A stretch of 64,000 nt of DNA, from assembly GCA_002269645.1 (NCBI GenBank), contig NIVC01001036.1:62001-126000 (forward strand), read 5' to 3'. Of this stretch, positions 5,021 through 25,876 are shown piece after piece. The stretch is from Macrostomum lignano. Its lineage: Eukaryota. Every line of letters begins with the position of its first letter. The first letter of the stretch is position 1. Below the pieces are notes generated by a model that saw only the letters and a program-made list of their open reading frames with translations, was not told the DNA's origin and ran no database searches. The position numbers and the translations under genes were made by a program.

Positions 5021-6254
5021 ACCTGCTCTTGCACAAAAATTCATATTATTAATTCATTATTTTAATTTTGACGACCATGTGTTGGTATTAGTGCGTGTTC
5101 TTAAAAGGGCCGTTTCAAGAACATAGCAATATTTAGCTCTGAGCAGCCCCTGAGTAGGCATCAACAAAAAAAATTAGCTGGTAGGAAAGCGAATTTAATT
5201 GAAAATAAAACAAAGAAAACAGATTATTGAAAAAAGAAATTAAAAAAATACTTTTTGTTCTTGTATAGCTACACTGAACCAGCTAATATAGAATGTAGGA
5301 TGGAAGGCAAAGAACTAAATAGCAAGTAAATAGAACAAGCCAACTGTAAAAAACAGAGATTATGTTTTCATGTTTCATTAACTTTCATAACAGAAACAGC
5401 AAATCAGATAGGAGTATCGAACCGGGCTTCTGCAATCCAAGCACAACAGCTTCGGCTTGTCTCCAATAAATTTAATTGATCGCTACATTGGCCAGCGGCA
5501 GTTGAAACACAATTATTTATCAACATATTTTTGGATAGCCTGTGCGCTGTCAGTTAGCAAGAAAATCTATGCAATAAACTAAATTGTATGGAACGCTGAC
5601 AAACTACTGTTAGTAGCTAAGTGACGCATTTTAATCGAGGTTTTTTTAGAAAAAAGAACTGTATTATCATATTATAAAGTATGCACAGAGGGCTGTGCCA
5701 ATAGCCAGGGTAAGCTAAGTAGGTCGCAAATAGAAAGAGCGTAGAAACCAGAAGGTAATTAAAAATTTCAATATAACAATAAATTGCATTTCATCTTGAA
5801 AGCAAACTAAACATTTTTTAAATAATATTGTATTAAACGGGTGCCGATAGAAAAAATACAAATTGAAACGGTTATTGTCTGTCTATAGTACTGGCAGTAG
5901 CAGTAGTAGTAGTAGTAGAAAAATACATTAAATTCATGGCAGAAAGGAGCCAAATTAATTAGAAAAATAATCCGTAAAAATTAATTTAAAAAAGTAACAA
6001 ATTATAAAATTAAATTAAAACAAATCAAAACGATCGGATACAGGAGGCTACAAACCAGCAGATTAAAAAAATAACAGCAATTCACAACAGATAAGTTTAT
6101 AACACAAACTGAATAGCTAATTTAGGAATATAAAAAACATCAATAAGACAGGCAGACAAACAAAAACAAAAGAACTCGTCACTTTCCTCTTCGAAATCAT
6201 GCCAGAGTACTTCTTTACCTTAAAGTTCCTTGATAATTGAATAACATTTTCTTT

Positions 6255-8795
6255 CTACTCCTGCTTCTGCTCCTGCTGTTGCTGCTGCTGCTGCTGCTGC
6301 TGCTGTTGCTGCTGCTGCGGCTGCGGCAGGGCCGCGGGCAGCGGAGAGCCAGCCAGCTCGAACAGCTGCTGCAGACCGACAGAGCGACCGCCAGTCACCA
6401 GCAGCACAATGTTGGCCGACTGCGGCCTGGCCAGCTGGCCCGGCCCCACGTGTCGGCCATAGACAGCGGCCAGAGCGGCGCCGCAGACCGGCTCAGTCAG
6501 CAGCTGGTGCTGGCAAAGGAAGCTGACGCTGGCCTTGGCCGCCTCATCCTGGCTGCAGGTCACCGAGTGCAACGGCTGCTCGCGGGCCGCGTCCAGCGCC
6601 CGCTGGCACGGCCGGCCGACTCCGCCGCCGCCGCCACCATCGAGGCAGCCGCCGTTGGTCGTTCGCAGCTCGGCGGCGATCACCGGCGTGGTGACCCAGC
6701 CGTAGCGCCACAGGCCGGACACGACGCCGGACAGTAGGCCGCCGCCGGACACAGGCAAAACGATAGCGTCGGGCTGTTCGCCGTTCAACGCCTCGGCGAG
6801 TTCGTCAACCAGGCCGCTGTAGCCCGTCCAGACGTCCTCGCTGTCGAACGGGTGCAGCAGGCAGACGGAGCGGCCCAGCTGGCCGGCCAGCAGCTCCGCT
6901 TGGCTGTGCGCCTCGGGCCAGTCGGCGCCGTGCAGCAACACCTGGGCGCCTTCGTCGGCGATGCGAGCGCGAGCCTCTTGGGCTACGGCGGCATCGTTGG
7001 CATTGGACGCGGCTGATTCGGGCAGCACGACAGTGCACTGCAGGCCGAGACGGGCAGCCGAGTAGGCGCAGGCCAAGCCGGAGTTGCCGGCGCAGCTGCT
7101 GCTGGTCACCACCTATTTATTTATTGATTGAAAGTAAGTTTAAAAAATACAGATAATGTCCTGACTAACTACTGAAGAAACGCATGTTGAGTAGCATTAA
7201 GATATCGTGTTTCCTAGAAATTCCTACAACTGTGACTAAAATTTGTTGCAATAGTTTACAGTTAAAGCGCCATTCAGCTGAAAAGATACATCTGATTTGC
7301 GAAATTTATAATTTTCTTTGCTTTTTATCCTTCACGTCTGAATTTTGGATACTATTGTATGTGTTGTGATAAGTTTTTGCACCCCGTTGCAGTCTGCTAT
7401 CTGGAACAAGCCATTTGCTTTTGACCATACAGGCAAAGCATTTTAAACCATCAGCCTGATTATAGTTCTGCCATATTGATGCAATAATGTTCTGCCGTCA
7501 TGATTTTTAAAGGTCAAAGCTTGCAGTCTGCCTGAGGATTAAGAGGTTGGGATTCCCTGAAAGTTAGGAGGTATTAAATGACTACCTGAAGGTTAGGAGG
7601 TGCTAAATGACTACCTGAAGGTTGGGGGGTGTTAAATGACTACCTGAAGGTTGGGAGTTGTTAAAGGACTACCTGAAGGTTGGGAGGTGTTAAAGGACTA
7701 CCTGAAGGTTGGGAGGTGTTAAAGGACTACCTGAAGGTTGAGAGGTGTTAAATGACTATCTGCAGGTTGGGAGGTGTTAAATGACTTCCTGAAGGTTGGG
7801 AGGTGTTAAAGGACTACCTGAAGGTTGGGAGGTGTTAAAGGACTACCTGAAGGTTGAGAGGTGTTAAATGACTATCTGCAGGTTGGGAGGTGTTAAATGA
7901 CTACCTGCAGGTTGGGAGGTGTTAAAGGACTACCTGAAGGTTGGGAGGTGTTAAATGACTACCTGAAGGTTGGGAGGTGTTAAAGGACTACCTGAAGGTT
8001 GGGAGGTGTTAAAGGACTACCTGAAGGTTGAGAGGTGTTAAATGACTATCTGCAGGTTGGGAGGTGTTAAATGACTTCCTGAAGGTTGGGAGGTGCTAAA
8101 TGACTACCTGAAGGTTGGGAGGTGTTAAATGACTACCTGAAGGTTGGGAGGTGTTAAATGACTACCTGAAGGTTGGGAGGTATTTAACGATTACCTGAGG
8201 ATTGAGAGTAAAATAGCGCCATAAACTCACGTGAGTGAAGCCCCGCTCAGCGGCCCGCCGCACGGCGTGAGCCATGCCGCGCAGGCACACGGACCCAGTT
8301 GGCTGGCAATTCTCCAGTTTGAGCCAAACGCGGCAGCCTTTGATGCCCATAGCTCTGGCCAGTGGCCGACTTTCAATCAGCGGAGTCCGCACGTGCAGCG
8401 GCAGCGGCGCCGGGACGCCAGCCGATGCGGCGGCCGCGGTGGCCAAGTCCGGGCACAGCAGGCCCAGCTGCGACAGAGCAGTCAGGGCGTCGTGCGGCGG
8501 CGAGTCCAAACTCGAGCCGTTGCTAGACAGCGAGACGTCAAGGTCGGAGGTGATCTCCTTGTGCCCGGCCAGTCTGTGCCCGCCATTGCCGCCGCCGCCG
8601 CTACCGCCGCCGCCACCACCGATGCCGTTGCTAGTGAGAGTGCGGAAAGCGTTCTGCGTGCCCAGAGCGTTGAACATGAGCAGGCTGTCAACCATTTCCT
8701 CTATGCCAGCCTGCGTGCCGCCGAAGCCGAAGCTGCCGCTGCCGCCGCCCCCAGTTGGACTGTCGGAGTCCAGCAGGCGGCTGAGACCACCGAAT
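6255..8795 (-). CDS. Serine dehydratase (SDS/SDSL-family, fold-type II PLP) domain with the catalytic Lys replaced by Cys. Exons 8795(or ATG 8695)-8231 and 7112-6255. Probably the 3' half of the RRM gene.
   Basis: The translation PLHVRTPLIES...VWLKLENCQPTGSVCLRG...AGNSGLACAYSAARLG...HPFDSEDVWTGY...LPVSGGGLLSGV...EPVCGAALAAVY...VTGG matches the SDS motif order. The phase-0 intron is CAC|GTGAGT (8230) ... ATAG|GTG (7113). There is a C-terminal polyQ. Confidence 0.92.
7562..8200. repeat. Minisatellite, 29-bp unit (gttaaatgactacctgaaggttgggaggt), ~22 copies, inside the SDS-domain intron
   Basis: Direct tandem repeat starting ~30 nt from the splice donor. Confidence 0.97.
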
Positions 8796-8934
8796 CTGCG
8801 GCGCGATTGGGTTTGAAGATTTGAGATGAGATGAGCGATCTGGATCTGTCAGCGGCGCTCTGGCCTGCTGTACTTTTGCACTGGGTTGGGGTGCCATAGA
8901 AATAAACTTAACGATTACGTATGCGCCTCTCAGC

Positions 8935-10150
8935 CTCGGTCTTTTTGTCTGTCTGTCTTAGTGTCTGCTTGTCTGTTTTTTAGTGTCTGTCCGTCTGTCT
9001 TAGTGTCTGCTTGTCTGTTTTTTTAGTGTCTGTCCGTCTGTCTTAGTGTCTGCTTGTCTGTTTTTTTAGTGTCTGTCCGTCTGTCTTAGTGTCTGCTTGT
9101 CTGTTTTTTTAGTGTCTGTCCGTCTGTCTTAGTGTCTGCTTGTCTGTTTTTTTAGTGTCTGTCCGTCTGTCTTAGTGTCTGCTTGTCTGTTTTTTTAGTG
9201 TCTGTCCGTCTGTCTTAGTGTCTGCTTGTCTGTTTTTTTAGTGTCTGTCCGTCTGTCTTAGTGTCTGTTTGTCTGTTTTTTAGTGTCTCTCCGTCTGTCT
9301 TAGTGTCTGCTTGTCTGTTTTTTAGTGTCTGTCCTTCTGTCTTAGTGTCTGCTTGTCAGTTTTTTTTAGTGTCTGCCCGTCTGTCTTAGTGTCTGCTTGT
9401 CTGTTTTTTTTGTGTCTGCCCGTCTGTCTTAGTGTCTGCTTGTCAGTTTTTTTTGTGTCTGCCCGTCTGTCTTAGTGTCTGCTTGTCTGTTTTTTTAGTG
9501 TCTGCCCGTCTGTCTTAGTGTCTGCTTGTCTGTTTTTTTAGTGTCTGCCCGTCTGTCTTAGTGTCTGCTTGTCTGTTTTTTAGTGTCTGTCCGTCTGTCT
9601 TAGTGTCTGTTTTAGTGTCTGATTAGTGCCTGTCTTAAAGTCTGTCTGTCTGGCAGTTTTAGTGTCTGTCTGTCTGCCTTAGTGTCTGTCTGTCTGCCTT
9701 AGTGTCTGTCTGTCTGCTTTAGTGTCTGTCTGTCTGCTTTAGTGTCTGTCTGTCTGCTTTAGTGTCTGTCTGTCTGCTTTAGTGTCTGTCTGTCTGCTTT
9801 AGTGTCTGTCTGTCTGATTTAGTGTCTGTCTGTCTGCTTTAGTGTCTGTCTGTCTGCTTTAGTGTCTGTCTGTCTGATTTAGTGTCTGTCTGTCTGCTTT
9901 AGTGTCTGTCTGTCTGCTTTAGTGTCTGTCTGTCTGCTTTAGTGTGTCTGTCTGCTTTAGTGTCTGTCTGTCTGTCTGATTTAGTGTCTGTCTGTCTGCT
10001 TTAGTGTCTGTCTGTCTGCTTTAGTGTCTGTCTGTCTGATTTAGTGTCTGTCTGTCTGCTTTAGTGTCTGTCTCTGTCTGCTTTAGTGTCTGTCTGTCTG
10101 ATTTAGTGTCTGTCTGTCTGCTTTAGTGTCTGTCTCTGTCTGTGTTAGTG
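8935..10150. repeat. Compound TGTC-based minisatellite: ~43-bp units (8935-9600) grading into ~21-bp units (9650-10150)
   Basis: Direct repeats tagtgtctgtccgtctgtcttagtgtctgcttgtctgtttttt and tagtgtctgtctgtctgcttt. Confidence 0.95.
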
Positions 10151-10912
10151 TCTGTCCTAGTGCCTGTTTTTAGCATTTGTCTGTCTTATTTGGCCTGTCT
10201 TCTGTCGTCTTAATTTCTGCCTGAATCTGGCTTAATGTTTCTTCAGTATATTCATATCTGTTTTTTATGTCTTACTAGTAGTGACTTAGTGACCGAATGT
10301 CTGCCTGTCTTAATATCGTGTCCATCCGTCTGTCCTCCTGTCCGTATTCATGCCAGTTTATTTTTACACATCTATATATAGATAGCTCGTATCCCAAAGA
10401 TCGAAGCAACCACGCTTTGCATTTTGGCCCGCTAGTCGGAAATGATCGGAAATCGATAACATCGATAATTTTACACAGGTAATCTCAAGCAGAAGTCTTT
10501 TTGCACAGCATTCCTCGCCTAAATTTCTGTTTAAGAAGCTGTCTCAACACTAAGCTCAGACTGTCCTACGTGTGTCGCCCCTAATATCAATGCTCGAGAC
10601 TTAAGGGCCTTAGGCTCGATTCTTAGCGTAGCATACCAGCTGTAAAGCAAGCCAATGCTAGAAATGTACAATTCCCCGACAACAAGCCAAGTTAAATTAA
10701 ACATCAGCCTGTCTGTAACATAAAGCGTATTTCACAAATATAAATTACAGAACCAGCTACACCAAGGTGAAGGTTTCCAAATTCGATGCTAATCTCTGCC
10801 GAATTTCCGTCGGCTAAAGCCGATCCTTTACCCACCTGTCTGGCCAAGCCGCAGTGCGGGTCAAGGGGCGAACAAACAAGTTGAACAACACGAAGCTATG
10901 AAGAGTTATTTT

Positions 10913-11164
<252 letters not shown>

Positions 11165-11569
11165 GACAGTAAGCTACGCCGCACAAGATCGCATTGCACA
11201 ATGCATAATAAAATTTGTAAAAGCAAAGATTTCGCTTCGTTATTATTAGTTGTAAAACTGAATTGCTGCTGCTGTAGCCTAAGAGAGAGTGGGAGAGAGG
11301 GGGGCAGGGGTAGGTGGCCATTGTCAGATAGGGAGCTTACACACTTGCAGGGTACTGCACCTGTGCACCTTAATTTCTGCGCTAGTGAGGGCAACTATAG
11401 AAGAGCCATGTTTCAATGTAGTAACACTGTTAAAAAGTGACCATTTTTATTACCTTTATCTCTGCCCACTTCATTCTTAATTCCTAGTCGATTTTTTATA
11501 CTCCTTTGAAGAAAACCGATGCGCTGTAAAATTCTTTGGCATTTTGACATATAGAGGCTTCGAGGGGCA

Positions 11570-12385
11570 CCAGGCCTCTCCCAGCTCTCTTAGATCAGAC
11601 ACCAGGCCTCTCCCAGCTCTCTTAGATCAGACACCAGGCCTCTCCCAGCTCTCTTAGATCAGACACCAGGCCTCTCCCAGCTCTCTTAGATCAGACACCA
11701 GGCCTCTCCCAGCTCTCTTAGATCAGACACCAGGCCTCTCCCAGCTCTCTTAGATCAGACACCAGGCCTCTCCCAGCTCTCTTAGATCAGACACCAGGCC
11801 TCTCCCAGCTCTCTTAGATCAGACACCAGGCCTCTCCCAGCTCTCTTAGATCAGACACCAGGCCTCTCCCAGCTCTCTTAGATCAGACACCAGGCCTCTC
11901 CCAGCTCTCTTAGATCAGACACCAGGCCTCCCCCAGCTCTCTTAGATCAGACACCAGGCCTCTCCCAGCTCTCTTAGATCGGACACCAGGCCTCTCCCAG
12001 CTCTGTTAGATCAGACACCAGTCCTCTCCCAGCTCTGTTAGATCAGACACCAGTCCTCTCCCAGCTCTCTTAGATCAGACACCAGTCCTCTCCCAGCTCT
12101 CTTAGATCAGACACCAGTCCTCTCCCAGCTCTCTTAGATCAGACACCAGTCCTCTCCCAGCTCTCTTAGATCAGACACCAGTCCTCTCCCAGCTCTGTTA
12201 GATCAGACACCAGTCCTCTCCCAGCTCTCTTAGATCAGACACCAGTCCTCTCCCAGCTCTCTTAGATCAGACACCAGTCCTCTCCCAGCTCTGTTAGATC
12301 AGGCACCAGTCCTCTCCCAGCTCTCTTAGATCAGACACCAGTCCTCTCCCAGCTCTCTTAGATCAGACACCAGTCCTTCCCAGCT
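11570..12385. repeat. Minisatellite, 32-bp unit (caccaggcctctcccagctctcttagatcaga), ~25 copies
   Basis: Direct tandem repeat adjacent to the donor of RRM exon 2. Confidence 0.97.
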
Positions 12386-12410
12386 CCCCAGCTCAAACAG
12401 CAGTGCTCAC

Positions 12411-15400
12411 CCGCCGGAGCCGAAGCCAGAGGAGCCGTTGAGGCCCGGGCTGGGGCCGCACAGGCTGGCGCTAAGCCGGCAGCCGGAGGCGCCCCCGGCC
12501 GCAGCGGCGCCCAGACCGGCCGAGTCGCGTTGCCGCCCGGTGTCCAGCGGCAGGTTGAACGAAGCGGACAGGCCAGCGTGGCGCGGGCCGGACCGGGCCC
12601 TGGCCGAGCCGTCCTCGGCGAATTTCACCAGCAGCGGGGCCGGCCACTCAGGTCCCTGGATTGGAGCAAAATGCAAACATGTATTATAAACAGTCAGTAC
12701 ACAGCTCCTCAGTACACAGACCCTCATACATGAACCCTCAGTACACAGCTCCTCAGTACACAGACCCTCATACATGAACCCTCAGTACACAGACCGTCAG
12801 TACACAAACCGTCAGTACACAGACCCTCAGTACACAGACCGTCAGTACACAGACCGTCAGTACATAGACCCTCAGTGCACAGACCCTCAGTACACAGACC
12901 CTCAGTGCACAGCCCCACAGTACACAGCCCCTCAGTACACAAACCTTCAGTACACAGACCCTCAGTGCACAGACCCTCAGTACACAGACCCTCATTACAC
13001 AGACCCTCAGTACACAGACCCTCAGTACACAGACCCTCAGTACATAGACCCTCAGTGCACAGACCCTCAGTACACAGACCCTCATTACACAGACCCTCAG
13101 TACACAGACCGTCAGTACACAGACCCTCAGTACATAGACCCTCAGTGCACAGACCCTCAGTACACAGACCCTCAGTACACAGACCATCAGTACACAGACC
13201 CTCAGTACACAGACCTTCAGTACACAGACCCTCAGTACACAGACCCTCAGTGCACAGACCCTCAGTACACAGACCCTCAGTACACAGACCCTCAGTACAC
13301 AGACCCTCAGTACACAGACCCTCAGTGCACAGACCCTCAGTACACAGACCCTCAGTGCACAGACCCTCAGTACACAGACCCTCAGTGCACAGACCCTCAG
13401 TGCACAGACCCTCATACATGAACCCTGTCTTATCTAATTCTACGAAAAACGTTTGCCAAATCAGTTAGGAAGTGACCTACAAAAGTGTTTTGATAGTCCT
13501 TCAACTATATTAGAATTCAACTTCGAATTGCCCGATCAAGGCCGGCTAGCGGCATGAAGTATTGCATTAGCAAGGCGGGGAATTTTCATTTTAAGCACCA
13601 AAATTGGCTATTACATCTTGTTTTTTGGACTTTTAAAAAGCATTTTGATCGGAAGTAATTACACAATTGAATATTGATCGAAAGATTTTCTAAGGTCAGC
13701 ATCCGATAGCTACGAACTTTATATATAGAAATAGACAATTAATTAAAGTACAGAGAAAACTTTTGAATCGAAGAATTTTCTATTCGAAGATAGGACAAGC
13801 TAGATAGCCTAGCTAAGTCTGCAGTAATATTATATAGAGTTTGTGAGTGCCCACAATTTTCCCACACTTTCATCACATGCTGTTACGAGTATTGCGCTGC
13901 AGTGAGATAAAAAATTGCAATTGTGAATGTCGTCAGTCAAAGCTTAGTATGCAGTACTTGTGCTCGAAGAGCGCACCCCCTGTCGCTGTCGCTATTCTCA
14001 GCACCCCAAGATGAACAATAGAATGTAATATAATGTACAAATAAGAAGCAAGCATATTATTACATCACGTAGGCAAAATTATACAGTAGAATATAATGAC
14101 GGAACTTTACAGATGATTTAATAACACTGGTTAATAGGAAGGCGAAACGCTTACACTAGTGGGGCTACACTACACCAGCTGATCAGCGTCCAGGCCAGCA
14201 AACAGGAGGGGGGAGGAGACAATTTCAAGCAATAATGACAGCCCCAGTAAAGTACAATGAGTCAGCCTTCTCTCTCTCTCGCACACACAGACACACTGAG
14301 AAGACAAGCTGAGTACAGTCGCATTAGTAAGAGGCGGCTATGGTGGGAAGTCTCACAATGGGTCTGCGCACTGATGAGTGGAACCGGCCTCCCCCCGTAT
14401 TTCTCCCGTAGGCATATAATAAAATAGCTAAGAGCTCCAACTGAGAGCAGAGAGCGAGCAAGACAGGGGAGCTCAGGGGGGGGGGGGGTGAGCAGAGAAC
14501 CGCGCTCTGAGCCCAGGTGAGAGGCTCATTTCAGGCATTAAAAAAAACCATCGAACCAAACACACACAGAGTTGGTGGGGTAGACTAGGCTTTGGCTACA
14601 AAAAACTGCGGTGGTCCGCGACCTACAGTAGGCTATTAATAGTGAAAATGTACGCTGAGATGACGCAAAGCAGCTGAGGTGATGAAGAGTACAGGGAGAC
14701 ACTCAATTTTTCTAAGAGCAGAACTTTGTTCTATTTATCACACATTATAAAATCTGACTCACATTTTTTGGGCCAGCATTCGCGTTTTTTCTTGCTTTAA
14801 TTAAACAGCAGTTATCAATCATATAATTCACATTTAAGGTGTTCAGATCTATGAGTTAGCAGGTACAGCCGGTTATAAGGCGAGATGGTCAGATAATACA
14901 TTGTAAAGCTTATGTGGATAATATGCGGATATAGATAGGTACTTTAATCTTTAAACCCTATATTCTTTTTAACGACCACAATTTATCAAGGCAATGCAGT
15001 AACAGCCCGAGATTCGATTGCAAGCCAGCAAACAACGGAAATGGCATGGCAATGGCGTATAGTTAAAGACATTATGGGCGACTAGCTAAAATTTAATGTT
15101 AGTGTAAGAGAATCTCTAGTCTGTTTATAAGCAGAAATTCAGGCAAGCAAACCACTATTGATATGAGGTGTGCAGCAAGCCTACCCTCTCAGATGTTCAG
15201 GTGTGCAGCATGCCTACCCTCTCAGATGTTCAGGTGTGCAGCAAGCCTATCCTCTCAGATGTTCAGGTGTGCAGCAAGCCTACCCTCTCAGATGTTCAGG
15301 TGTGCAGCAAGCCTACCCTCTCAGATGTTCAGGTGTGCAGCAAGCCTACCCTCTCAGATGTTCAGGTGTGCAGCAAGCCTACCCTCTCAGATGTTCAGGT

Positions 15401-17125
15401 GTGCAGCAAGCCTACCCTCTCAGATGTTCAGGTGTGCAGCAAGCCTACCCTCTCAGATGTTCAGGTGTGCAGCAAGCCTACCCTCTCAGATGTTCAGGTG
15501 TGCAGCAAGCCTACCCTCTCAGATGTTCAGGTGTGCAGCAAGCCTACCCTCTCAGATGTTCAGGTGTGCAGCAAGCCTACCCTCTCAGATGTTCAGGTGT
15601 GCAGCATGCCTATCCACTCAGGTGTTCAGGTGTGCAGCATGCCTATCCACTCAGGTGTTCAGGTGTGCAGCATGCCTATCCACTCAGGTGTTCAGATGAG
15701 ACACAGCTACCCTCTCAGATCTTCAGGTGAGACACAGCTACCCTCTCAGATCTTCAGGTGAGACACAGCTACCATCTCAGATGTTCAGGTGAGACACAGC
15801 TACCATCTCAGATGTTCAGGTGGGACACAGCTACCCTCTCAGATGTTCAGGTGAGACACAGCTACCCTCTCAGATGTTCAGGTGAGACACAGCTACCATC
15901 TCAGATGTTCAGGTGAGACACAGCTACCATCTCAGATGTTCAGGTGGGACACAGCTACCATCTCAGATGTTCAGGTGAGACACAGCTACCATCTCAGATG
16001 TTCAGGTGGGACACAGCTACCATCTCAGATGTTCAGGTGGGACACAGCTACCCTCTCAGATCTTCAGGTGAGACACAGCTACCATCTCAGATGTTCAGGT
16101 GAGACACAGCTACCCTCTCAGATGTTCAGGTGGGACACAGCTACCCTCTCAGATGTTCAGGTGAGACACAGCTACCATCTCAGATGTTCAGGTGGGACAC
16201 AGCTACCATCTCAGATGTTCAGGTGTGCAGCATGCCTACCCTCTCAGATGTTCAGGTGAGACACAGCTACCATCTCAGATGTTCAGGTGAGACACAGCTA
16301 CCCCCTCAGATGTTCAGGTGAGACACAGCTACCCTCTCAGATGTTCAGGTGAGACACAGCTACCATCTCAGATGTTCAGGCGGGTCCAACGTTACTCTCT
16401 TGGCACTCTAATCTCACCTGCAGCCCATTGGTGTTCATGATAGCCCGCTCAGCGTTGCTCTTATCGTCGAAGGTGACGAAGCCGACGCCCTTGGACAGAC
16501 CCGTGTTGGGGTCCGTCAGCACCCGGATCTGCACCAGCTTGCCAAACCGAGAGAACAGCGCGTTCAAATCGGCCTCAGTCCAGGTGCGCGGAATTCCTGA
16601 CACGTACAAATTGCCCGGATTGCGCAACGGTAGGGCACCACCGCCGCTGCCGCCACCGCCTCCGCCACTACCTCCGCCGCCGCCTCCGCTGTGCCGCTCA
16701 GCCCGCGGCATCTGCGGCAGAGGCAGCGGCGAGCCGTCGGGGCCAACGAAGCCGGCGCAGGAGCTGCTGCCGGTGGCGGCGTAGGCAACTCGCAGCTTCT
16801 TGTTGCCAAGCCGCATGCCGTGGAACTCGCCGATGGCCTTCTCGGCGTGCTCCGGGAACAGGAAGTCTACGAAGCCGTAGCAGAGCGAGGCGCCAGTCTG
16901 CTTGTCGCGCACCACTTTGTGAGTACGAATTGGGCCGACCTTTTCGAATAGGGCGCGCAGATCCTCAGTGTCGAATGTCTGTGGCAGATAATTGATGATT
17001 AGGTTAGTGCGGCTGCGGTCCTCGTGGGACTGCTGCTGCTGCTGATGCTCCTGCTGTGGCTGGCCAGCGCCTCTGCCCAGCTGGGCCTCCAGCATGCCAC
17101 TTGGCGCCGATTCCTGCTGCAACAT
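12411..17125 (-). CDS. Sxl/ELAV(Hu)-family RNA-binding protein with two RRMs. Exons 17125-16418 and 12655-12411 (or stop at 12407).
   Basis: RRM1 reads RTNLIINYLPQ...RDKQTGASLCYGFVDF...KKLRVAYA. RRM2 reads NLYVSGIPRT...GLSKGVGFVTF...AERAIMNTNGLQ and is completed by exon 2, GPEWPAPLLVKFAED. The phase-0 intron is CAG|GTGAGA ... TCCAG|GGA. The start could be ATG 17125 or ATG 17095. Confidence 0.92.
12694..13420. repeat. Minisatellite, 15-bp unit (cagtacacagaccct), ~48 copies
   Basis: Direct tandem repeat ~40 nt from the exon-2 acceptor. It is the source of the 5-aa periodic ORFs. Confidence 0.97.
15160..16380. repeat. Two-zone minisatellite: 33-bp unit (gatgttcaggtgtgcagcaagcctaccctctca), then 31-bp unit (gatgttcaggtgagacacagctaccctctca)
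   Basis: Direct tandem repeat in RRM intron 1, ending 37 nt from the donor. Confidence 0.97.
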
Positions 17126-19961
17126 TTTCAAATAGTTATTATTGAACTTATTGCAGCAACTTACTATAACTTGAGACAGATGTTTTAATATTTTTTTTCT
17201 GGCTTGCTATATGAATAGGTGCATCCATAGCCATGATAGCTATGATAAAGAAAAAGAAGAAATAGAGGTCAAATAAGATCTTAATATCAGGCGTCAGGAT
17301 CAATATTTGAGAATTAGACTTTTTTCTTATCTTAGTTTGAAAAAGTGCCAAGATAAGAGATTCTTTCTTTTTAGATTGGTAGAATTGCTTGGCTATAAAA
17401 GTTTGTAAAATTTTATACAAAACAAATAGTCTTAAATCTAAAAAAATTCAATCTAATCTTGCATTTTGTTGCCAAATAAAATCTTGAAAATTCCAGAAAG
17501 TCAATATTTTAAAAACCTATTTGCTATTGTTGCTAAGCTTCTAAATGAAATAATTTAATGTGTCTTATAATCATAAAAAATCCAAAGTTTATATAATAAA
17601 GAGACAAATAAATGCTTTAAACTATTTTATTTTAAAAATAACTATATAGATTCAACCTTGTCATATTTGTTTTAATAACAAAGCACTTATATAGCTGTTT
17701 AGCAAATTATTATTTGAAAAAATAGAAAACTTTAAAAATTTACAACTTTGTATAAAAGAGAATGAAATATGAAAAATAAAGGAAATGATATCATGATATA
17801 CTATAAACATTTACTGGTGCTATAATATTTTAGATAAATTATAAGCAACTTAGACAATACTTGATACAATGAATTATTGATTTCCTTGATTTTATTTAAA
17901 CCAAAATTCTAAAAAATTAATAAATAATTTGGTAGACTAATTTAGACTACATAAATTAGTTTTTTAATTCTTTTCAAAAACAAATGTTCAAATTTATTTC
18001 ATTATTCAAATCAATTGCTAGTTGATCTTGGTTTCCAATATAAAAGTAAATAAACATATATGATATAGATAAACATAAATTTCATTTAAGCTACATAATC
18101 TATATAACTAAATCTGAATATAATAAATATTAAAATGAAAGACAGTTTGTTACAAACTTCTATGAAAAATACACATCACATCACTGCAATATACTTTATT
18201 TGATAAAACGAAGCGCAATATCGTTGGTAAATTTGCTAGTTTTGATAATAACCGGACTAAAACCTTTTTAGAAAATTAGTTTCTTTATATTTTATTAACA
18301 CTAACTTGGATCTAGTACTGTAGTACATTTAGAGGTCGATGACTCGTTTTTAGCGCTTCACAAATATTCGTTGGAATCAACTAAAAATGTTTCTGTTTTT
18401 TTTATTTTATTCATAAAATAGGTCATAAGTGTGTTAAACTTTAGCTGTCAAAATTTGCTTTGCCTTATTACTTTGAAAGTACAAATGCGAAGTTTAAAGC
18501 GGAAAAAAGTGTAGTTCGTAGAAAGCGCGATATCTTTATTTACTTCTTATTTGTATTTCCTACCACTACTAATTACAACAAATTGTTTAAAAAACACATT
18601 TGATAAAGCAGATTTTTTTACTAAAAAGCTAAATATCTTTGCAAGAACAAAAATACTTTTAATAGCTGTTTCAAATATAGCCCATGCATTCTGCCATTGA
18701 CGCGCTATGTTTCAAATGTATGCTATCAAAACTCATGAAGTCCTACATGTATGTACACAGAGTTTGTTTAGTCTCCTAGGCAAGGACGGATTAAGTGGGT
18801 CAGAAGCCAAGTTTCTCAGAATATTTAGCTGCAGCTGGGAGTGGTTTTGCGCAAAGAACACAATTAGGATTAAGACTTTATTTTGAGCAAAAACCCATTT
18901 TAAAAAGCGTGTGGAATGCTCATCTTTAGTAAAAAAAATTTCATTTTTGTAAATTAGATTCCCTGTTGTAGATAAAATTTTGTACCCTACACCCCAAAAG
19001 ATTTATATATTTAGTTGCATATAATATGCTTCAATAAAATTTTCTCCTATCCCGCGGGGTACACGTGCACTGTACATGCAGTGTACGTCATGATCGCATC
19101 AAAAAATTTACTCGTAATTTAAACGAAATTTCGGCGGGTTCTATTTCAGTCGTCCTTGGACCTTGGTATGCATAATACTTGCTCAATGGCCTGCTGTAAA
19201 ACTACCAAGGATCGCTAGAAATTACCGTTATATCAGGACGTAACACTACTATACGTACTACAACTGATACAATTACATGTAACGCGGTACTTCTAGTGGT
19301 TCTTGAAAACTACGTGTATGAATTAATGCTATACTAAAGTGCGTATATATTACATCGTCTCTTTGGGTGTATAATCATGCTTTATTTTTGTATGCTTTTA
19401 TTCATTATACACGTACACGTACACTCATAGATAGCTCTTAAACCATGAAAAATTAATTATAAAGGTATGTCCTACCACATATATAGTACATGATGTACCT
19501 TTTGAACTGGATATAATAAAATAAAAGAAAACGGAGGCTAAAAGATCGATGGTTAAAAAACAACCATCTTCTAATAAATCTAAATATATATAAGCAGAAG
19601 ATTGTATACATACGCGTGCAACTCTTTTAAGAGTCGTCGCTTAATGGAAAGGAATAGAGTGGGAGGATAGGTATCAGGTTCAAGTACACTGACCGGTCCA
19701 GTAGTGAAAAAGAGAGAATTGGAATAGGATTAGTAATGCAAGTTCCAGCCAACACGATGGGGCGGACGGACGAAAAGATGCAGGCCGGCAGTACACACAA
19801 CAGCTGACAATGGGGAGAGAAATCCGGCCGACTCCGCATCGTACCGCTCTCCGATGGGCATAAAAATGAAGAGTCGTCATTGATTTTGCAGCAACATTAT
19901 ACATCAGCACTCGTCGCAAATCAATAGAGCCTATAGAGCGCCTGCGGCCCCCCAATACAGA

Positions 19962-21169
19962 ATGTCAAACAGAGGCAAAAGTGGCAACAAAAACACGGCC
20001 TTCGAGGTGAGCCTGAACGAAGGTAACATCACGCCGCGGAGCGGCAAGCCAAGACATTTGGACCGGCGCCTAGAAGATCGACCATCGACCCCGGACGTTA
20101 TCGACAAGAGGCAGCGAGAGGCTGAGGAGCGACGCAAGGTAGGAGCCTAGGAGGGCCCTTTTGGGGGCCAGCGTACCCCACCATGTTTTGAAAGAAACTT
20201 CCTCAATACCGTCGAGTCGATTTAATCAGCAATATTTTTAGGACGATCAGATTTTCTGCATAAAAGCTGAATTTGCCTTGATGAGCATTCTATTAGTTAG
20301 AGGTACGAGTATATCAAGGTTTAAAGCAACTTGAATGACATCAGGTTGAGGGGGCCTTAGCCCAGTGGTCCAGCGCGGCGCTCTGATGTATTCTACCAAT
20401 GGAGCACGCTCGATTCCAAGTGCAGTCACATTCATTTGGGGCTAAATTTGAATTTCGGCTTGGCTCTGCTCGTTTACGCCCTTGAAATTAACACCCTTGA
20501 AATCCAAACCCAAGAAGTGTACATGCATAACGATAAATAAAGTTAGGGCCTGTGTGAGTGTGTACCTGTGCGTATGACTGCGTACGTATCCGCGCACTTG
20601 TGTGCCTGCTCAGGTGAGTCGGCGGAATGGGCAGCAATGCCTCTCGCCGGTTGTGTGACAATGCTGTTTAAAGTGCGCCAGGGTGCACACAACCCCTGTG
20701 ACTTCTCAAAAATCAGATTGAAAGAACTTTCAGGAACTAAAGTGTCTAACACTGACTATTTTTGAAAATTATCCTGTTAAAAATTATGAATTAAGGGTTG
20801 GCAAACTCCGGCTCACCGCCTGCGAAGCCTCTCTACCCGCCTCTCGGGTCCTTTGAGACTTCACAAATAGCAATCCGGCCCACTCAAGATTTGTCTCTTC
20901 TCAGCTCTCTTTTCCTCTCTTCTCCATTTCCTTTATCACCTATCTGCACTCTCCCCTCTCTCCGCTAGATTCCATACCTGACCCTTGGGTTAAAACAGTT
21001 TGCCGAGCCCCGATCTAAATCATCACAAACGCACCGATCGCGCAATACACACTCGCAGAAAAAGGAAGAAGAGATGCTGCGACGCGTTGCCCAACACAAT
21101 GTCAAGGTGGAGAAAATGGCCAAAGAGGCTGAGCAGCGGCGTCGAGCCTACGGACACAAAGCTAATTGA
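19962..21169 (+). CDS. Stathmin-like tubulin-sequestering protein, 95 aa. Exons 19962-20138 and 21059-21169.
   Basis: MSNRGKSGNKNTAFEVSL...TPRS...IDKRQREAEERRK|KKEEEMLRRVAQHNVKVEKMAKEAEQRRRAYGHKAN* carries the stathmin AFE(L/V)xL and EAEERRK motifs. The phase-0 intron is AAG|GTAGGA ... CGCAG|AAA. Confidence 0.8.
20350..20712 (+). mobile_element. tRNA-derived SINE, family B, copy 1 (in the stathmin intron)
   Basis: A box tagcccagtggtc and B box-like gctcgattcc. The body (taacgataaataaagttagggcc...gcagcaatgcctctcgccggttgtg) is shared with 23043-23403 and 60052-60333. Confidence 0.85.
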
Positions 21170-21847
21170 TTACTCAATGCAGAACTAGAAGGATTATGAT
21201 GATCAACGAATACTAATTTGCTTACAGCTTCTTATACGATCTATAAGTGCTCAGAGGAAGAGCTCAAAGCTAATAGTTGCACTTTGCACTTATTAGTAAC
21301 TAAAAAGCAAACTAATTGTGCAAAATAATAGACACCTGATCCGATTGTAGTTTTTGATGCTTAGATTAACATTAGATATAAAAGTACATGTAATACACCT
21401 CACAGCCTAGTCTATAAGACAGATAAAACACTACACAGTTATATACGACCATGTTATTATCCGGGACTGTTTAACCAGAAATAAACTGTCAGAAAATATT
21501 TTCAAGCTTGATTTATTATGAATTATTTTTATTAACAAAAACAATTTCACACCGTTACTTTCCGACTATTGCATTTTAATGCTATTGAATTGCCAGTAAA
21601 CAGGTACAAACCGATACCAAGGACCACTAGAAGTTACCGTTGACTTCCTACTTTAGCACTAAATTATCTATACTAGTATAACTCACCTGTCTTACCTGGT
21701 ATCTGTTCGATTAGAGGTTCGAATGACAAGTTATTCGAATTAGAATATTAAATATGATTTTTCTTAAAACTTTAGATTAGCTATACAGAACGCCAGTGTA
21801 AAGTCCTGACGATACAAAATAACTTTTAGTAGTCCTTAACTATTAAA

Positions 21848-24800
21848 TTAATCATCAAGCTTCAAAGCTTTCTGTCTGGCCTGCTTCAGTCGCAGGCGTT
21901 CAAACCGGGCATTAGTGTGGGATTTGAACAGCGGATTAGCTTTCAGCCAGGATTCGTAAGCGGAGCGGAACAGCTGATATTCTTTGGGATCGACGGGGCG
22001 GCCACCGCAGGCCGAGCTGACCTCGGCGACGGCCAAGGAGGACGCAGAGGAGGCCGCTGCTGCGGGCAGGCGGTCGCGGCACCTGGCCACTTCGGCCTCC
22101 AACAGGCGGACAACAGCCGGACTAGGCGGCACATCAAAGCCGGTCATCCGCCTCACCAGCCAGATTCTATAGGCCAAATCGTAGGGCTGGGCGGCGCTTA
22201 GCATAGCGTGAAACACGGCCTGGTCAGGCTGGGCCGCGTCGCGCGCCATGTCCGCCAGGAGGCGCTCGGCGGCCTCCTTGGAGCGGCAGGCGCCGCCCAG
22301 AGCCACGTAGGTGTCCCGGTCCGGCCGCAGGCCATTCGACCGCATCTCGTCCAAAGTGTCCGAGCAGTCCAGCCGGTTCCGAACCCGATAGCGGAGCAGG
22401 GCATTGTACAGGTTGGCCCCGCCGCCGGGAGTCGATGCCCGGTGGAAGCCGCGGCTCCGGCAGAGCCGCATCAGCGTCCGCTCAGCTTCCGGTATTGGCG
22501 GAAGCATCTCCATCAGTTCGAAAGCGATCGCCGGAGTTGGCTCGGCGCCGTCGGCTCGCATTGACTCGAGTAGGCCAGCTAAGCCGCCAATTAGAGTAAG
22601 GCGTTGCCATGGCAACCTGAGCGCATCAGGCGAGTCTGGCAGGCTCGGCAGCGGCTGACGCGGCCGGAGGAGGCTGAGCGGGCAGCTCAAAGCCAGAGCG
22701 GCTGGTGGCTGAGCCGGCAGTGAGAAGTCCAGCTCTGACTGCGGCAGTTCAGCAGCCGACTCAGCTACCGGCTGCCTCATCACTGTCAGATTCTGGGCGT
22801 CCAGCTCAGCCGACCAGCCGTCCTGCAGTCGCTGCATCGCGGCGCCAGCGCCGGAGCCTTTGACGTCACCAGATTGGCCGTCGCCGAGTCGATTGGAGCC
22901 GGACCGCATGAAAGCCCGGGCTGGCGGCCCGGCCGCCGCTTCCGCCGCTGCCATGAGGCTCGGCTGACCGATGCCGCAGGCTCGAAGGCACCTGAGATGG
23001 GGATTTGGTAGAGTTGCATCTGTGTTGCATCGTCTACTAAAATAGCCCAGCGGTCTAGCGCAGGCTCTGGTGTGCTAGCGGCCTAGGCTCGATTCCAAGT
23101 GCAGTCGCATTAATTTGGGGCTAAATTGGAATTTCTGCTTGGCTCTGCTCGTGCAATTAACGGCCGTGAGGGGCTAACCCCTAAGACACAGTGAAGTGTA
23201 CATGCCTAACGATAAATAAAGTTAGGGCCGCTGTACACTCCTGTGTGAGTGTGTGCCTGTGCGTGTGACTGCGTACGTATCCGCGCGCTTGTGTGCCTGC
23301 TCAGGGGAGTCGGCGGAATGGGCAGCAATGCCTCTCGCCGGTTGTGTGACAATGTCGCTTAAAGTGCGCCAGGGTTGCACACAGCCTCTGTGACTTATAA
23401 AAAGAGAACAATAGATTTCTGCGACAGTTATTGGAAGACCTTTCCAGTTAGAAGTTAGACCAACCTGAGCAGCCGATGATAGTGATGGGCCGACAAGCGA
23501 CCACCGAATGCCAGACGGAATCGGCGCCAAACAAGCAGTGCGATGGCGCTGCCGGATGTTTTGTCGGCGAAGGCCGCCTGCAGCAGCGCGTTTAGCATTG
23601 TAGGCAGCGGGTGCTGCTGTCCAACGGATACGGAATCGTCGAATATCTGCAGTAGTTGTTGCACAGTTAGTTTCAGTGAGATTTAAATAGAAATTTGCAA
23701 ACATCACTTAGAAGCAATGTTTTTCTATTGTGGCCACTAATAATAAGACTTGGGAGAGGAGCGGCATCTACTGAGGGAGAAGGGTAAGGGGAAGGGCCAC
23801 CGTAGCAACAGCGGCACCCACAGCAGGACAGTGAGGGAGCAGCGGCAACCAATGCTGCAGGACACTGAGGGAGCAGCGGCAACCAAAACTGCAGGACACC
23901 GAGGAAGAGGAAGCAGCGGTAACCAATGCTGCAGGACACTGGGGGAGCAGAGGCAACCACTGCAGGACACTGAGGGAGCAGAGGCAACCACTGCAGGACA
24001 CTGAGGGAGCAGAGGCAACCACTGCAGGACACTGAGGGAGCAGCGGCAACCAATGCTGCAGGACACTGAGGGAGCAGCGGCAACCAATGCTGCAGGAAAC
24101 TGAGGGAGCAACGGCAACCAATGCTGCAGGACACTGAGGGAGCAGCGGCAACCAATGCTGCAGGAAACTGAGGGAGCAACGGCAACCAATGCTGCAGGAC
24201 ACTGAGGGAGCAGCGGCAACCAATGCTGCAGGACACTGAGGGAGAAGAGGCATCCCATAAAAACAATGAAGTAAGACAAACCTTAAGCGCCTCCTGCACT
24301 AGTCCATTCTTGGCGCAGGCTAGCACAGCAAAATAGTACACGTATCTGTGCTGCTCCCCTCCGCCCCCAGCCTGCTTGGAGTCTTCGCAGAGCGCGTGAT
24401 AATAGCGACAGGCCAGCTCGCCCGCCACCCGGTCCGGAGTGCCGTCATAGTAAGAGGCCTTAGCCAGAGAGTGCAGATAGTGACAATGGGTCGCATAGTT
24501 GGGCTCCACACCGGCTGAGCGACACCTGAATTGAATTATGATTCCATAATAAATCTTTATTAGTCTGGATTAAACTCTCAAAGTCTCTAAACATTTGCTC
24601 GATTCAATCTCGATTGTAACAGCCATTCAGTCAGTTCAGTCACCTAGGCTAAGAAGCATCCCAGAATATCAATGGCATCGCCGCAGGTAACACGTACAGG
24701 TAAAATAGGAAAGAGGTGATTCCAGACGACTCTAAAATGATGAGATGTCACGGTAAAAGTCGCCAGAAAGTCGTTAAAGAGTCACCTAAGAGTCACTTTG

Positions 24801-25876
24801 AAGCGTTTTATTGTCAGAGATTCTGAAAATGACTCTTGGACGGTGGAGTGGTATCTGAGGCGTTAGAGTCGCTGAATTACATATAGAGTCCTGGTGTTGC
24901 GTCACTTTATGAATTAGAATCGAATATCGCATTTAAAACAACTTTATTTAGTCTACTTGAGTTAGTAGAAAGTTAAGCGCTGACCGCTAACACAGACTTT
25001 TTTATGATTCTGCAACTCACGTGATGCACTAGTGACTCAACAGTCGCCTCTCCGTCGCATTCATTAAAGTCGTTTATCATAGATAGTTGTTACTCCTAAA
25101 ATAAACTAACTCCTAAAATAAACTCTAAAAAGGACCTTTAAAGCTTATTTAAGTACTGAAATTGTTTTTAATTGCTAGTGAAAAAATATTTAAATTTAAA
25201 ACTAGCGGGTAAAAAGCGCGAGTATATCAAAAATTGCCTCGGCAGCTAATTAGTTATCAAAAACCTTTATTTTTACGAATCATAATCAGGCATCGCACCT
25301 ATTCATCACCGCCTTAACCTCGTCGTAGGCGCCAACCGAGGCCAGGTGTCGCATTGTCTGATTCATTATTCGCCTAGTGGGCAGGAATCGATCCTCGCCG
25401 ATCATGTCTCGATGCAGCAGGCGCACAATGCCGGCCGTGTCGCCGGCCTCCGCTAGCTTGTCTAGCCGTCGCAGATACCAGCCTTCGTCGTGCTTCCTGC
25501 CGACTCGCGCTAGAGGCCGATGATCGGGTAGCCGGTCCTCGTCAATAATAACTGTATCGTCTGGCGCCGATTCCGACATAGCGTCGGCGGCCTCTTCTAG
25601 GCCGAGCTCGATGTCGATCCGGGCGGATTCGGGCGGCTCTACTAGGCTGCTGGTGCGGGCCAGGGCGCCGAATTCGAAGCCAGATTTGTCCGTCCGCATC
25701 GGCTGCTGTTGCTGTTCAACCCGACGCCGATTGGCTTTGTTCCGATTGGCCAGCTGTCCAAATCGAAACGCGCTGCTGGAGTCCTCCATGGTGGCCACGG
25801 AGCTGCTGCCAAGCCGGCGACTGGCCGCAGCCACTGTCCTGGTGGCAGATGATAGGCACAGGCGACAGAGCAGCAT
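21848..25876 (-). CDS. PTCD1: Mitochondrial pentatricopeptide-repeat protein, PTCD1-like, 715 aa. Exons 25876-25299, 24525-24282, 23646-23465, 22991-21848.
   Basis: The N-terminus is Arg/Ser/Ala-rich, like a presequence (MLLCRLCLSSATRTVAAASRRL). The helical repeats resemble PTCD1 as I recall it (WYLRRLDKLAEAG..RDMIGEDRFLP; DKTSGSAIALLVWR; RCLRACGIG; YNALLRYRVR; PDRDTYVALGGAC). All four exons join in frame via GT-AG introns (578+244+182+1144 = 2148 nt). Confidence 0.85.
23043..23403 (+). mobile_element. tRNA-derived SINE, family B, copy 2 (antisense in PTCD1 intron 3)
   Basis: Colinear with the copies at 20350 and 60052. A box tagcccagcggtc and B box ggctcgattcc. Confidence 0.85.
23800..24245. 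repeat. Minisatellite, 31-34-bp unit (ggacactgagggagcagcggcaaccaatgctgca), in PTCD1 intron 2
   Basis: Direct tandem repeat. Confidence 0.93.

Follow-up and report, generated by a model that had tools for sequence, protein, structure and literature searches.

An ELAV-like RRM pair fused to a serine-dehydratase fold without its catalytic lysine in Macrostomum lignano, a flatworm

A 64,000-nucleotide (nt) stretch of the Macrostomum lignano genome (Mlig_3_7 assembly, contig NIVC01001036.1, positions 62,001 to 126,000; hereafter the window) carries on its minus strand, at 17125-6255, what we read as one gene, BOX15_Mlig010810g1, in which a pair of ELAV-like RNA recognition motifs (RRMs) is joined to a serine-dehydratase (SDS) fold that has lost catalysis. 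We place the probability of this reading at roughly 85%. Four joined exons give 2376 nt, or 791 codons and a stop, with no internal stop codon. The 791-amino-acid (aa) product runs from RRM1 and RRM2 through a disordered hinge of ~190 aa to an SDS fold of the PALP family. That a Gly/Ser-rich hinge connects a double RRM with an SDS domain in one protein had been predicted in the initial annotation of the window, and it is now supported by GenBank models at two loci, fused proteins in more than 20 flatworm species, a single exon in Opisthorchis felineus and contigs from Schistosoma mansoni. The fusion is real and conserved; the function proposed for it below draws on its relatives.

Gene structure and evidence for the join

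Exon 1 (17125-16418, 708 nt, aa 1-236) encodes a Q-rich N-terminus, RRM1 (aa 41-116, 17005-16778), a Gly-rich inter-RRM linker (16774-16625) and most of RRM2, and ends at the donor CAG/GTGAGA (slashes mark splice boundaries). It is followed by intron 1 (16417-12656, 3762 nt, GTGAGA...CCAG). Exon 2 (12655-12411, 245 nt, acceptor TCCAG/G) supplies the final RRM2 strand (GPEWPAPLLVKFAE) and the first part of the hinge, and closes with a phase-2 donor, GGCGG/GTGAGC. Intron 2 (12410-8796, 3615 nt) is the junction that the initial annotation had predicted. Exon 3 (8795-8231, 565 nt, acceptor CCGCAG/A, donor CAC/GTGAGT) completes the hinge and opens the PALP domain with its first ~55 residues. Three sites within it recur below, namely a run of five G residues (G5, 8756-8752), Met352 (8695-8693) and the TGC codon of Cys488 (8287-8285). 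Intron 3 (8230-7113, 1118 nt) is in phase 0, and exon 4 (7112-6255, 858 nt, acceptor AATAG/G) encodes the remainder of the PALP fold, which ends at about aa 747 (window 6390), a poly-Q tail (6329-6258) and the TAG stop (6257-6255).

Checked against the sequence, the predicted exon sizes (708+245+565+858), splice sites and length of 791 aa were all borne out. So were the peptide at the exon 2/3 junction, ..GSSGFGSGG/FGGLSRLLDSDSPTGGGGSGSFGFGG..EEMVDSLL, its in-frame continuation into the SDS domain, and the position of the ATG of the SDS open reading frame (ORF; 8695-8693), exactly 100 nt 3' of the acceptor next to 8796. All three donors of the gene fit the M. lignano donor consensus GT[G/A]AG (PMC8629364). 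Base composition separates the coding from the non-coding parts, with 68% GC in exons (82% at third codon positions) vs 46% in introns. No further coding-like block was found in introns 1-3, where the sole long open stretches are tandem repeats. In particular, an additional exon or a stop between 12411 and 8795, which would have undone the join, is absent from intron 2, which offers tandem repeats only.

These repeats, six unrelated arrays with units of 15, 20/43, 29, 31 and 32 nt together with (CT)124, make up 57% of the gene's intron sequence. About half of intron 1 consists of a 15-nt unit (12694-13418) and a 31-nt unit (15181-16380); the 32-nt unit, (CT)124 and the 20/43-nt unit occupy 63% of intron 2, and the 29-nt unit lies in intron 3 (7556-8198).

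On their own, matching splice phases and an open stretch of 33 codons in DNA rich in GC would be weak evidence for the join. What raises it above chance is the corresponding fused model in GenBank for this locus, together with the orthologous fusions across flatworms. The GenBank model, PAA73106.1 (779 aa, 5'-partial, RRM_1 plus PALP), spans window positions 17107-6255, and the locus that carries it, once reversed, matches window 1-27107 at 100% identity. The GenBank model lacks six residues of the 791-aa model at the N-terminus and another six in the poly-Q tail. The annotation of M. lignano was built from StringTie/TACO assemblies, de novo transcripts mapped with BLAT, TBONE and TransDecoder, with TBONE cutting transcriptional units at spliced-leader and poly(A) peaks (PMC5730564). 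The 18-nt CAG-repeat gap between the annotated model and the genome equals the repeat length of another copy of the gene, on NIVC01000487.1, and may be the footprint of a de novo transcript mapped over the whole gene.

The M. lignano genome holds three near-identical copies of the gene (NIVC01001036.1, NIVC01000487.1 and NIVC01001348.1), each with all four exons in unchanged order; their protein models were drawn from the 90% cluster of the fused protein. The copy on NIVC01000487.1 has a fused model of its own, PAA82197.1 (781 aa). The third, on NIVC01001348.1, is annotated as SDS-only (PAA69090.1 / A0A267F5P6, 429 aa, 'L-serine ammonia-lyase'), starting at MVDSLL. Its exon 3 (locus 9902-10465) has lost 1 nt in the G5 run (exon positions 40-44, equivalent to window 8756-8752), 57 nt upstream of the SDS ATG, which breaks the fused frame. 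This deletion alone accounts for the SDS-only annotation, since the ORF caller took the shorter ORF; it may be either a homopolymer error of the assembly or a real pseudogenising lesion. Substitutions among the three copies are synonymous in 13 cases and non-synonymous in four, divided as 7:0 in the RRM part and 6:3 in the SDS part, plus M358I in the hinge. Since about three-quarters of random coding changes are non-synonymous, each half is under purifying selection.

Both fused GenBank models are 5'-partial and begin 12-18 nt downstream of the genomic ATG (17125-17123). At this locus the model starts 18 nt downstream, with APSGM (17107); the NIVC01000487.1 copy (locus 5989-6001) starts 12 nt downstream, with ESAPSGM, at a GAA codon. 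The sequence after the genomic ATG, ATG TTGCAG CAG/GAA, includes a perfect trans-splice acceptor motif ([T/C]TNCAG), and the M. lignano spliced leader ends in an ATG. Joined before CAG or GAA, this ATG would read in frame, so the spliced leader rather than 17125 may supply the start codon. An N-terminal exon of the neodermatan type upstream of 17125 was also considered and rejected, as tblastn of eight orthologue N-termini against 17001-22000 returned only noise (E >= 0.38).

The two RRMs and the serine-dehydratase fold

Pfam detects two RRM_1 domains in the N-terminal half (E 2.6e-36). The best PDB sequence matches, with both RRMs aligned, are HuR, HuD and HuC (E 2.7e-43 to 1.3e-39), and Sxl follows behind (E 2e-32). 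The aromatic residues of RNP2 and RNP1 are intact in both motifs (LIINYL and CYGFVDF in RRM1, LYVSGI and KGVGFVTF in RRM2). An AlphaFold2 model of the 791-aa protein, built on 28 sequences, reaches confidence values (pLDDT) above 90 in RRM1 (aa 37-117), RRM2 (168-251) and the PALP fold (445-765), so all three modules are predicted to fold. Values fall below 50 in aa 1-35, the inter-RRM linker (118-167) and the hinge (252-444), within which a short helix, EEMVDSLLMF (aa 349-357), is predicted at low confidence. Foldseek searches with this model return SDS structures first, followed by the tandem RRMs of HuR, HuD and Sxl.

The initial description of the RRMs as Sxl/ELAV-type therefore needs refining: there are indeed two RRMs of this type, but they are closer to ELAV/Hu than to Sxl. 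The ELAV/Hu proteins (HuR/ELAVL1, HuD, HuC and Drosophila ELAV) are the best match to RRM1-2 in both sequence and structure, at ~37-38% identity in Foldseek, and they share a long hinge after RRM2. Unlike them, the fused protein lacks RRM3 and ends in an SDS fold instead; its hinge is ~190 aa, and its inter-RRM linker is Gly-rich and 50 aa long, vs the short linker of ~10-12 aa typical of ELAV/Hu proteins. No RRM match follows aa 250 in Pfam and no RRM3-like exon was found in the introns, so that the SDS fold stands, as had been proposed, at the usual place of RRM3. Sxl resembles the fused protein in carrying a tandem pair of RRMs from this subfamily and lacking RRM3, but it has a short linker and no C-terminal enzyme fold. 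Orthology to Sxl is not supported, given the lower score than Hu, the long linker and the nearest relatives (flatworm RRM+PALP proteins first, generic ELAV-like proteins next). The gene is also neither melav1 nor melav2, the canonical three-RRM elav-like genes of M. lignano (melav2 encodes 422 aa).

The C-terminal half is a full-length PALP fold (Pfam E 4.2e-52, profile positions 5-295 of 295). Its best PDB matches are human SDSL, human SDS and rat SDS (E ~1e-45 to 1e-43), aligned over the whole enzyme, and Foldseek gives TM scores of 0.75-0.80 to rat, human and fungal SDS/SDSL structures (1PWE, 4H27, 1P5J, 1PWH, 5C3U and 2RKB). Identity to human SDS (1P5J), human SDSL (2RKB) and rat SDS (1PWE) is 34-37% over full-length alignments. 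The fused domain differs from these enzymes in its position behind two RRMs and in its active site. The lysine that forms the Schiff base with pyridoxal phosphate (PLP) is replaced by Cys488 (GSVCLRG vs GSFKIRG in SDS enzymes), through a TGC codon that the three genomic copies share, and the PLP-stacking Phe just before Cys488 has become Val. The substrate loop S-x-G-N-A reads SSSCAGNSG, with a two-residue insertion; the first Gly of the phosphate-binding tetraglycine loop is Ser (VSGGGLL); and the 'SIAxSLG' active-site segment has been lost in a deletion of ~30 aa, with a Gly run (GGGGGG) in its place. Still present are the SxGN-loop Asn, all but one of the four loop glycines and, in EPVCGAAL, the Cys in contact with PLP N1. 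The Schiff-base lysine is essential in fold-type II PLP enzymes. Since this lysine is lost and other active-site elements are altered or deleted, the SDS domain of the M. lignano protein is very probably not an enzyme.

A canonical SDS is encoded elsewhere in the genome. PAA55083.1 (337 aa) keeps GSFKIRG and is encoded in three exons (NIVC01002812.1, locus 6001-8311), the first intron of which (..Q/VV..) lies at the position of intron 3 in the fused gene (..H/VV..). Over the first 42 PALP residues, the two domains are 83% identical. Recent gene conversion was considered as a source of this similarity and rejected: 14 of the 34 codons for shared residues differ synonymously, and the likeness therefore reflects old divergence under protein-level constraint. 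UniProt A0A1I8GLH6 (629 aa) is made up of two joined copies of SDS, a pattern that points to either a tandem duplicate or model merging in an older assembly.

Orthologous fusions, their origin and the genomic surroundings

The initial annotation had suggested that the fused form be sought in other flatworms and in architecture databases, and there it proved widespread. A profile search recovered RRM_1+PALP orthologues in more than 20 flatworm species. They include the trematodes Paragonimus, Dicrocoelium, Opisthorchis, Clonorchis, Echinostoma, Fasciolopsis, Calicophoron, Heterobilharzia, Trichobilharzia and about ten Schistosoma species; the cestodes Spirometra, Schistocephalus, Mesocestoides and Hydatigera; and, from an exhaustive search, the monogenean Cichlidogyrus, alongside Macrostomum. 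Partial models from Protopolystoma are probably fragments of the same fused gene. Clonorchis sinensis GAA52697.1 (1541 aa), in which the RRM starts from residue 654, is probably over-merged with an upstream gene. The exhaustive profile search covered 1.84 billion representatives, and no RRM+PALP protein from outside the flatworms appeared among its top 150 matches; 17 of the longer matches in this list, 16 of them above 450 aa, were scanned with Pfam. In other lineages, the SDS fold has been recruited into multidomain proteins with different partners. For example, in an unrelated recruitment, XP_074641592.1 of the nemertean Tubulanus polymorphus has two PDZ domains before a PALP domain with an intact lysine, and another protein combines PALP with a class I/II aminotransferase.

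The flatworm proteins, which carry names such as 'L-serine ammonia-lyase', 'Serine dehydratase-like' and 'ELAV-like protein 2', share their domain order and a near-identical RRM1 (EDRSRTNLIINYLPQ..GASLCYGFVDF..K[RK]LRVA[YF]A). The last strand of RRM2 is also recognisable ([A/G]PEW.[A/S]PL). With its RRM1 motifs, RRM2, long linker and C-terminal PALP domain, the M. lignano protein belongs to this group. Neodermatans have two features that the M. lignano protein lacks, a further conserved motif at the N-terminus and an extension at the C-terminus. Their RRM2 has a 25-40-aa insertion, has lost RNP1 and goes undetected by Pfam. The catalytic lysine is kept in trematodes (GSFKIRG) and the monogenean (SSHKYRG), and lost in cestodes (GSVLFRG, GSVVLRG, GSVTLRA). 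RRM2 and the lysine thus run in opposite directions, with RRM2 intact in M. lignano and degenerate in Neodermata.

Two independent lines of evidence show that the flatworm fusions are not merged gene predictions. In O. felineus (CRM22_001736), exon 5 runs uninterrupted over aa 387-545, which comprise 112 linker residues and the first 47 PALP residues, including the catalytic Lys, and the RRM exons are joined to it across introns of 29-83 nt. In S. mansoni, the whole 970-aa RRM+PALP ORF of A0A3Q0KMS9 lies on intron-free contigs of ~3.85 kb in 175 Logan run assemblies. Given the seven introns of the Opisthorchis orthologue, such contigs can only derive from spliced mRNA.

A neighbour-joining tree of SDS domains places all flatworm sequences in one clade (98% bootstrap) and the neodermatan fused domains in another (100%). 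The M. lignano fused domain groups either with the neodermatan fused clade (44%) or with the stand-alone M. lignano SDS (56%), and the tree by itself would neither confirm nor exclude that the fusion arose once. Plain orthology between the RRM halves and an identical order of domains make one ancient fusion the economical reading. On these sequence comparisons, a single origin is likely but not proven, and the fusion most likely predates the split of Macrostomum from the parasitic flatworms.

Across the three M. lignano copies, the gene spans ~10.5 to 14 kb, with intron lengths that differ, presumably by array copy number; about 25 tandem arrays of this kind are scattered over the whole window. 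The upstream neighbour (21848-25873, minus strand) encodes a 714-aa protein with weak PPR_2/PPR_3 matches. It also precedes the NIVC01000487.1 copy, so the duplication extends beyond the fused gene. A Pfam scan of ten other large ORFs in the window yielded nothing but one PPR protein.

Competing readings, proposed role and significance

Several points weigh against the reading of one gene for an RNA-binding protein with an inactive SDS fold. Transcript support for the M. lignano junction is second-hand, coming through the annotation pipeline. An inter-RRM linker of ~10 aa shapes the RNA cleft in Hu and Sxl proteins, and the 50-aa linker is unlike it. The fused SDS domain of M. lignano does not group firmly with the neodermatan fused domains, and RNA binding, dimerisation and ligand binding would all be carried over from homologues. 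Lastly, shorter models exist, namely the SDS-only PAA69090.1, the 215-aa RRM-only fragment A0A1I8I0G4 from an older M. lignano assembly and a 413-aa RRM-only isoform in S. haematobium, and separate isoforms may accompany the fused protein.

The shorter models bear on two alternatives. According to one, the fused model is an artefact of two neighbouring genes or an operon, with the RRM gene ending after exon 2 and an SDS gene beginning at exon 3 with its own cap or a spliced leader at 8796 and starting at Met352. M. lignano does have spliced-leader trans-splicing and operons, the trans-splice motif [T/C]TNCAG is partly matched by the acceptor CCGCAG, and the third copy is annotated as a complete 429-aa SDS protein beginning at MVDSLL. 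Yet that annotation is explained by the 1-nt deletion, TBONE left the fused model uncut at two loci and Met352 is not conserved in orthologues. Moreover, a spliced-leader AUG joined at 8796 would be out of frame, opening a 37-codon upstream ORF that overlaps Met352, and the fusion lies within a single Opisthorchis exon and on the intron-free S. mansoni contigs. A separate SDS gene led from 8796, which the initial annotation had raised as a challenge to its own model, is thus highly improbable. According to the other, the gene yields shorter products alongside the fused protein: an RRM-only form, arising from a different choice of poly(A) site or splicing after exon 2, an SDS-only form, or both. 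Coupling of the domains would then be regulated. For S. haematobium, RefSeq lists a 969-aa RRM+PALP protein (XP_035590219.2, 'ELAV-like protein 2, variant 2') and the 413-aa RRM-only form (XP_051074409.1), several schistosome annotations include isoforms of 610-843 aa, and both RRM-only and SDS-only fragments occur in M. lignano databases. The M. lignano fragments are, however, explained by the frameshifted copy and the fragmented older assembly, and the isoforms of other species are computational predictions, which leaves regulated coupling a tentative proposal, somewhat on the unlikely side.

A further alternative accepts the fusion and holds that the M. lignano domain is still an active PLP-dependent dehydratase, making the protein both an enzyme and an RNA-binding protein. 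The confidently predicted fold, the retained Asn, three loop glycines and PLP-N1 Cys, and the lysine kept by trematode and monogenean orthologues are in its favour, as is the dehydratase activity reported for a liver fluke. The replacement of an essential lysine by Cys in all three copies, together with the Phe-to-Val change, the loop insertion and the missing SIAxSLG segment, makes it very unlikely, and the canonical stand-alone SDS could supply the activity in M. lignano. In trematodes and monogeneans, judging from their sequences, the fused protein may still be the serine/threonine dehydratase, because the lysine is kept and no separate SDS gene turned up for these groups in our searches. 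Tandon & Misra (1980, as cited in PMC11795093) reported such activity from a liver fluke.

Under the preferred reading of an RRM pair with an inactive SDS fold, the M. lignano protein would be an RNA-binding regulator whose tandem RRMs bind U/AU-rich RNA as those of ELAV/Hu proteins do, and the dead SDS fold would act as a non-catalytic module at the position of RRM3. SDS enzymes are homodimers, and RRM3 of ELAV contributes to multimerisation. For this reason, homodimerisation, which would bring four RRMs together, appears the most plausible role of the SDS fold. Ligand binding would also be possible, with the Asn, three loop glycines and the PLP-N1-contacting Cys still in place. The initial suggestion of dimerisation or sensing fits M. 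lignano better than catalysis does because the catalytic lysine is absent; taken alone, such a role stands at about even odds. A more specific version, in which the SDS domain is a metabolite sensor for serine, threonine or PLP that controls RNA binding by the RRMs through ligand-dependent dimerisation or conformational change, is improbable, as is its corollary that the ligand would be bound non-covalently where the lysine is lost and catalytically in trematodes. If it were true, a single polypeptide would link amino-acid status to post-transcriptional regulation in flatworms, and each time the lysine disappeared, in Macrostomum and in cestodes, an enzyme would have turned into no more than a sensor or scaffold.

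No description of an RRM-SDS architecture and no expression data for the gene were found in full-text and supplement searches, in keeping with the initial impression that the architecture was undescribed. It is nevertheless already recorded in GenBank and UniProt, under the names 'L-serine ammonia-lyase', 'serine dehydratase-like', 'ELAV-like protein 2, variant 2' and 'hypothetical protein'. Such enzyme names have consequences. For instance, the sole SDS homologue of Echinococcus multilocularis, EmuJ_001093200, was assigned as a threonine deaminase by reciprocal BLAST, with a relative expression of ~0.002, no detectable protein and no flux through that route; RRMs are not mentioned (PMC11795093, 2025). 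By analogy with the related taeniid Hydatigera, it is probably a fused, lysine-less orthologue, in which case the assignment as threonine deaminase is probably wrong. Metabolic reconstructions that count the gene as an SDS or threonine deaminase enzyme in cestodes and M. lignano are probably wrong as well, as the lysine is missing.

This conserved gene, found only in flatworms in these searches, puts a metabolic-enzyme fold in the place of ELAV RRM3 and offers a natural experiment on the recruitment of enzymes into RNA regulation. The graded series it presents, in which trematodes and monogeneans still have the lysine while cestodes and Macrostomum have lost it, includes a species, M. lignano, that is tractable to transgenesis and RNA interference. 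In its fused form, the protein is absent from vertebrate hosts and may therefore also interest parasitologists.

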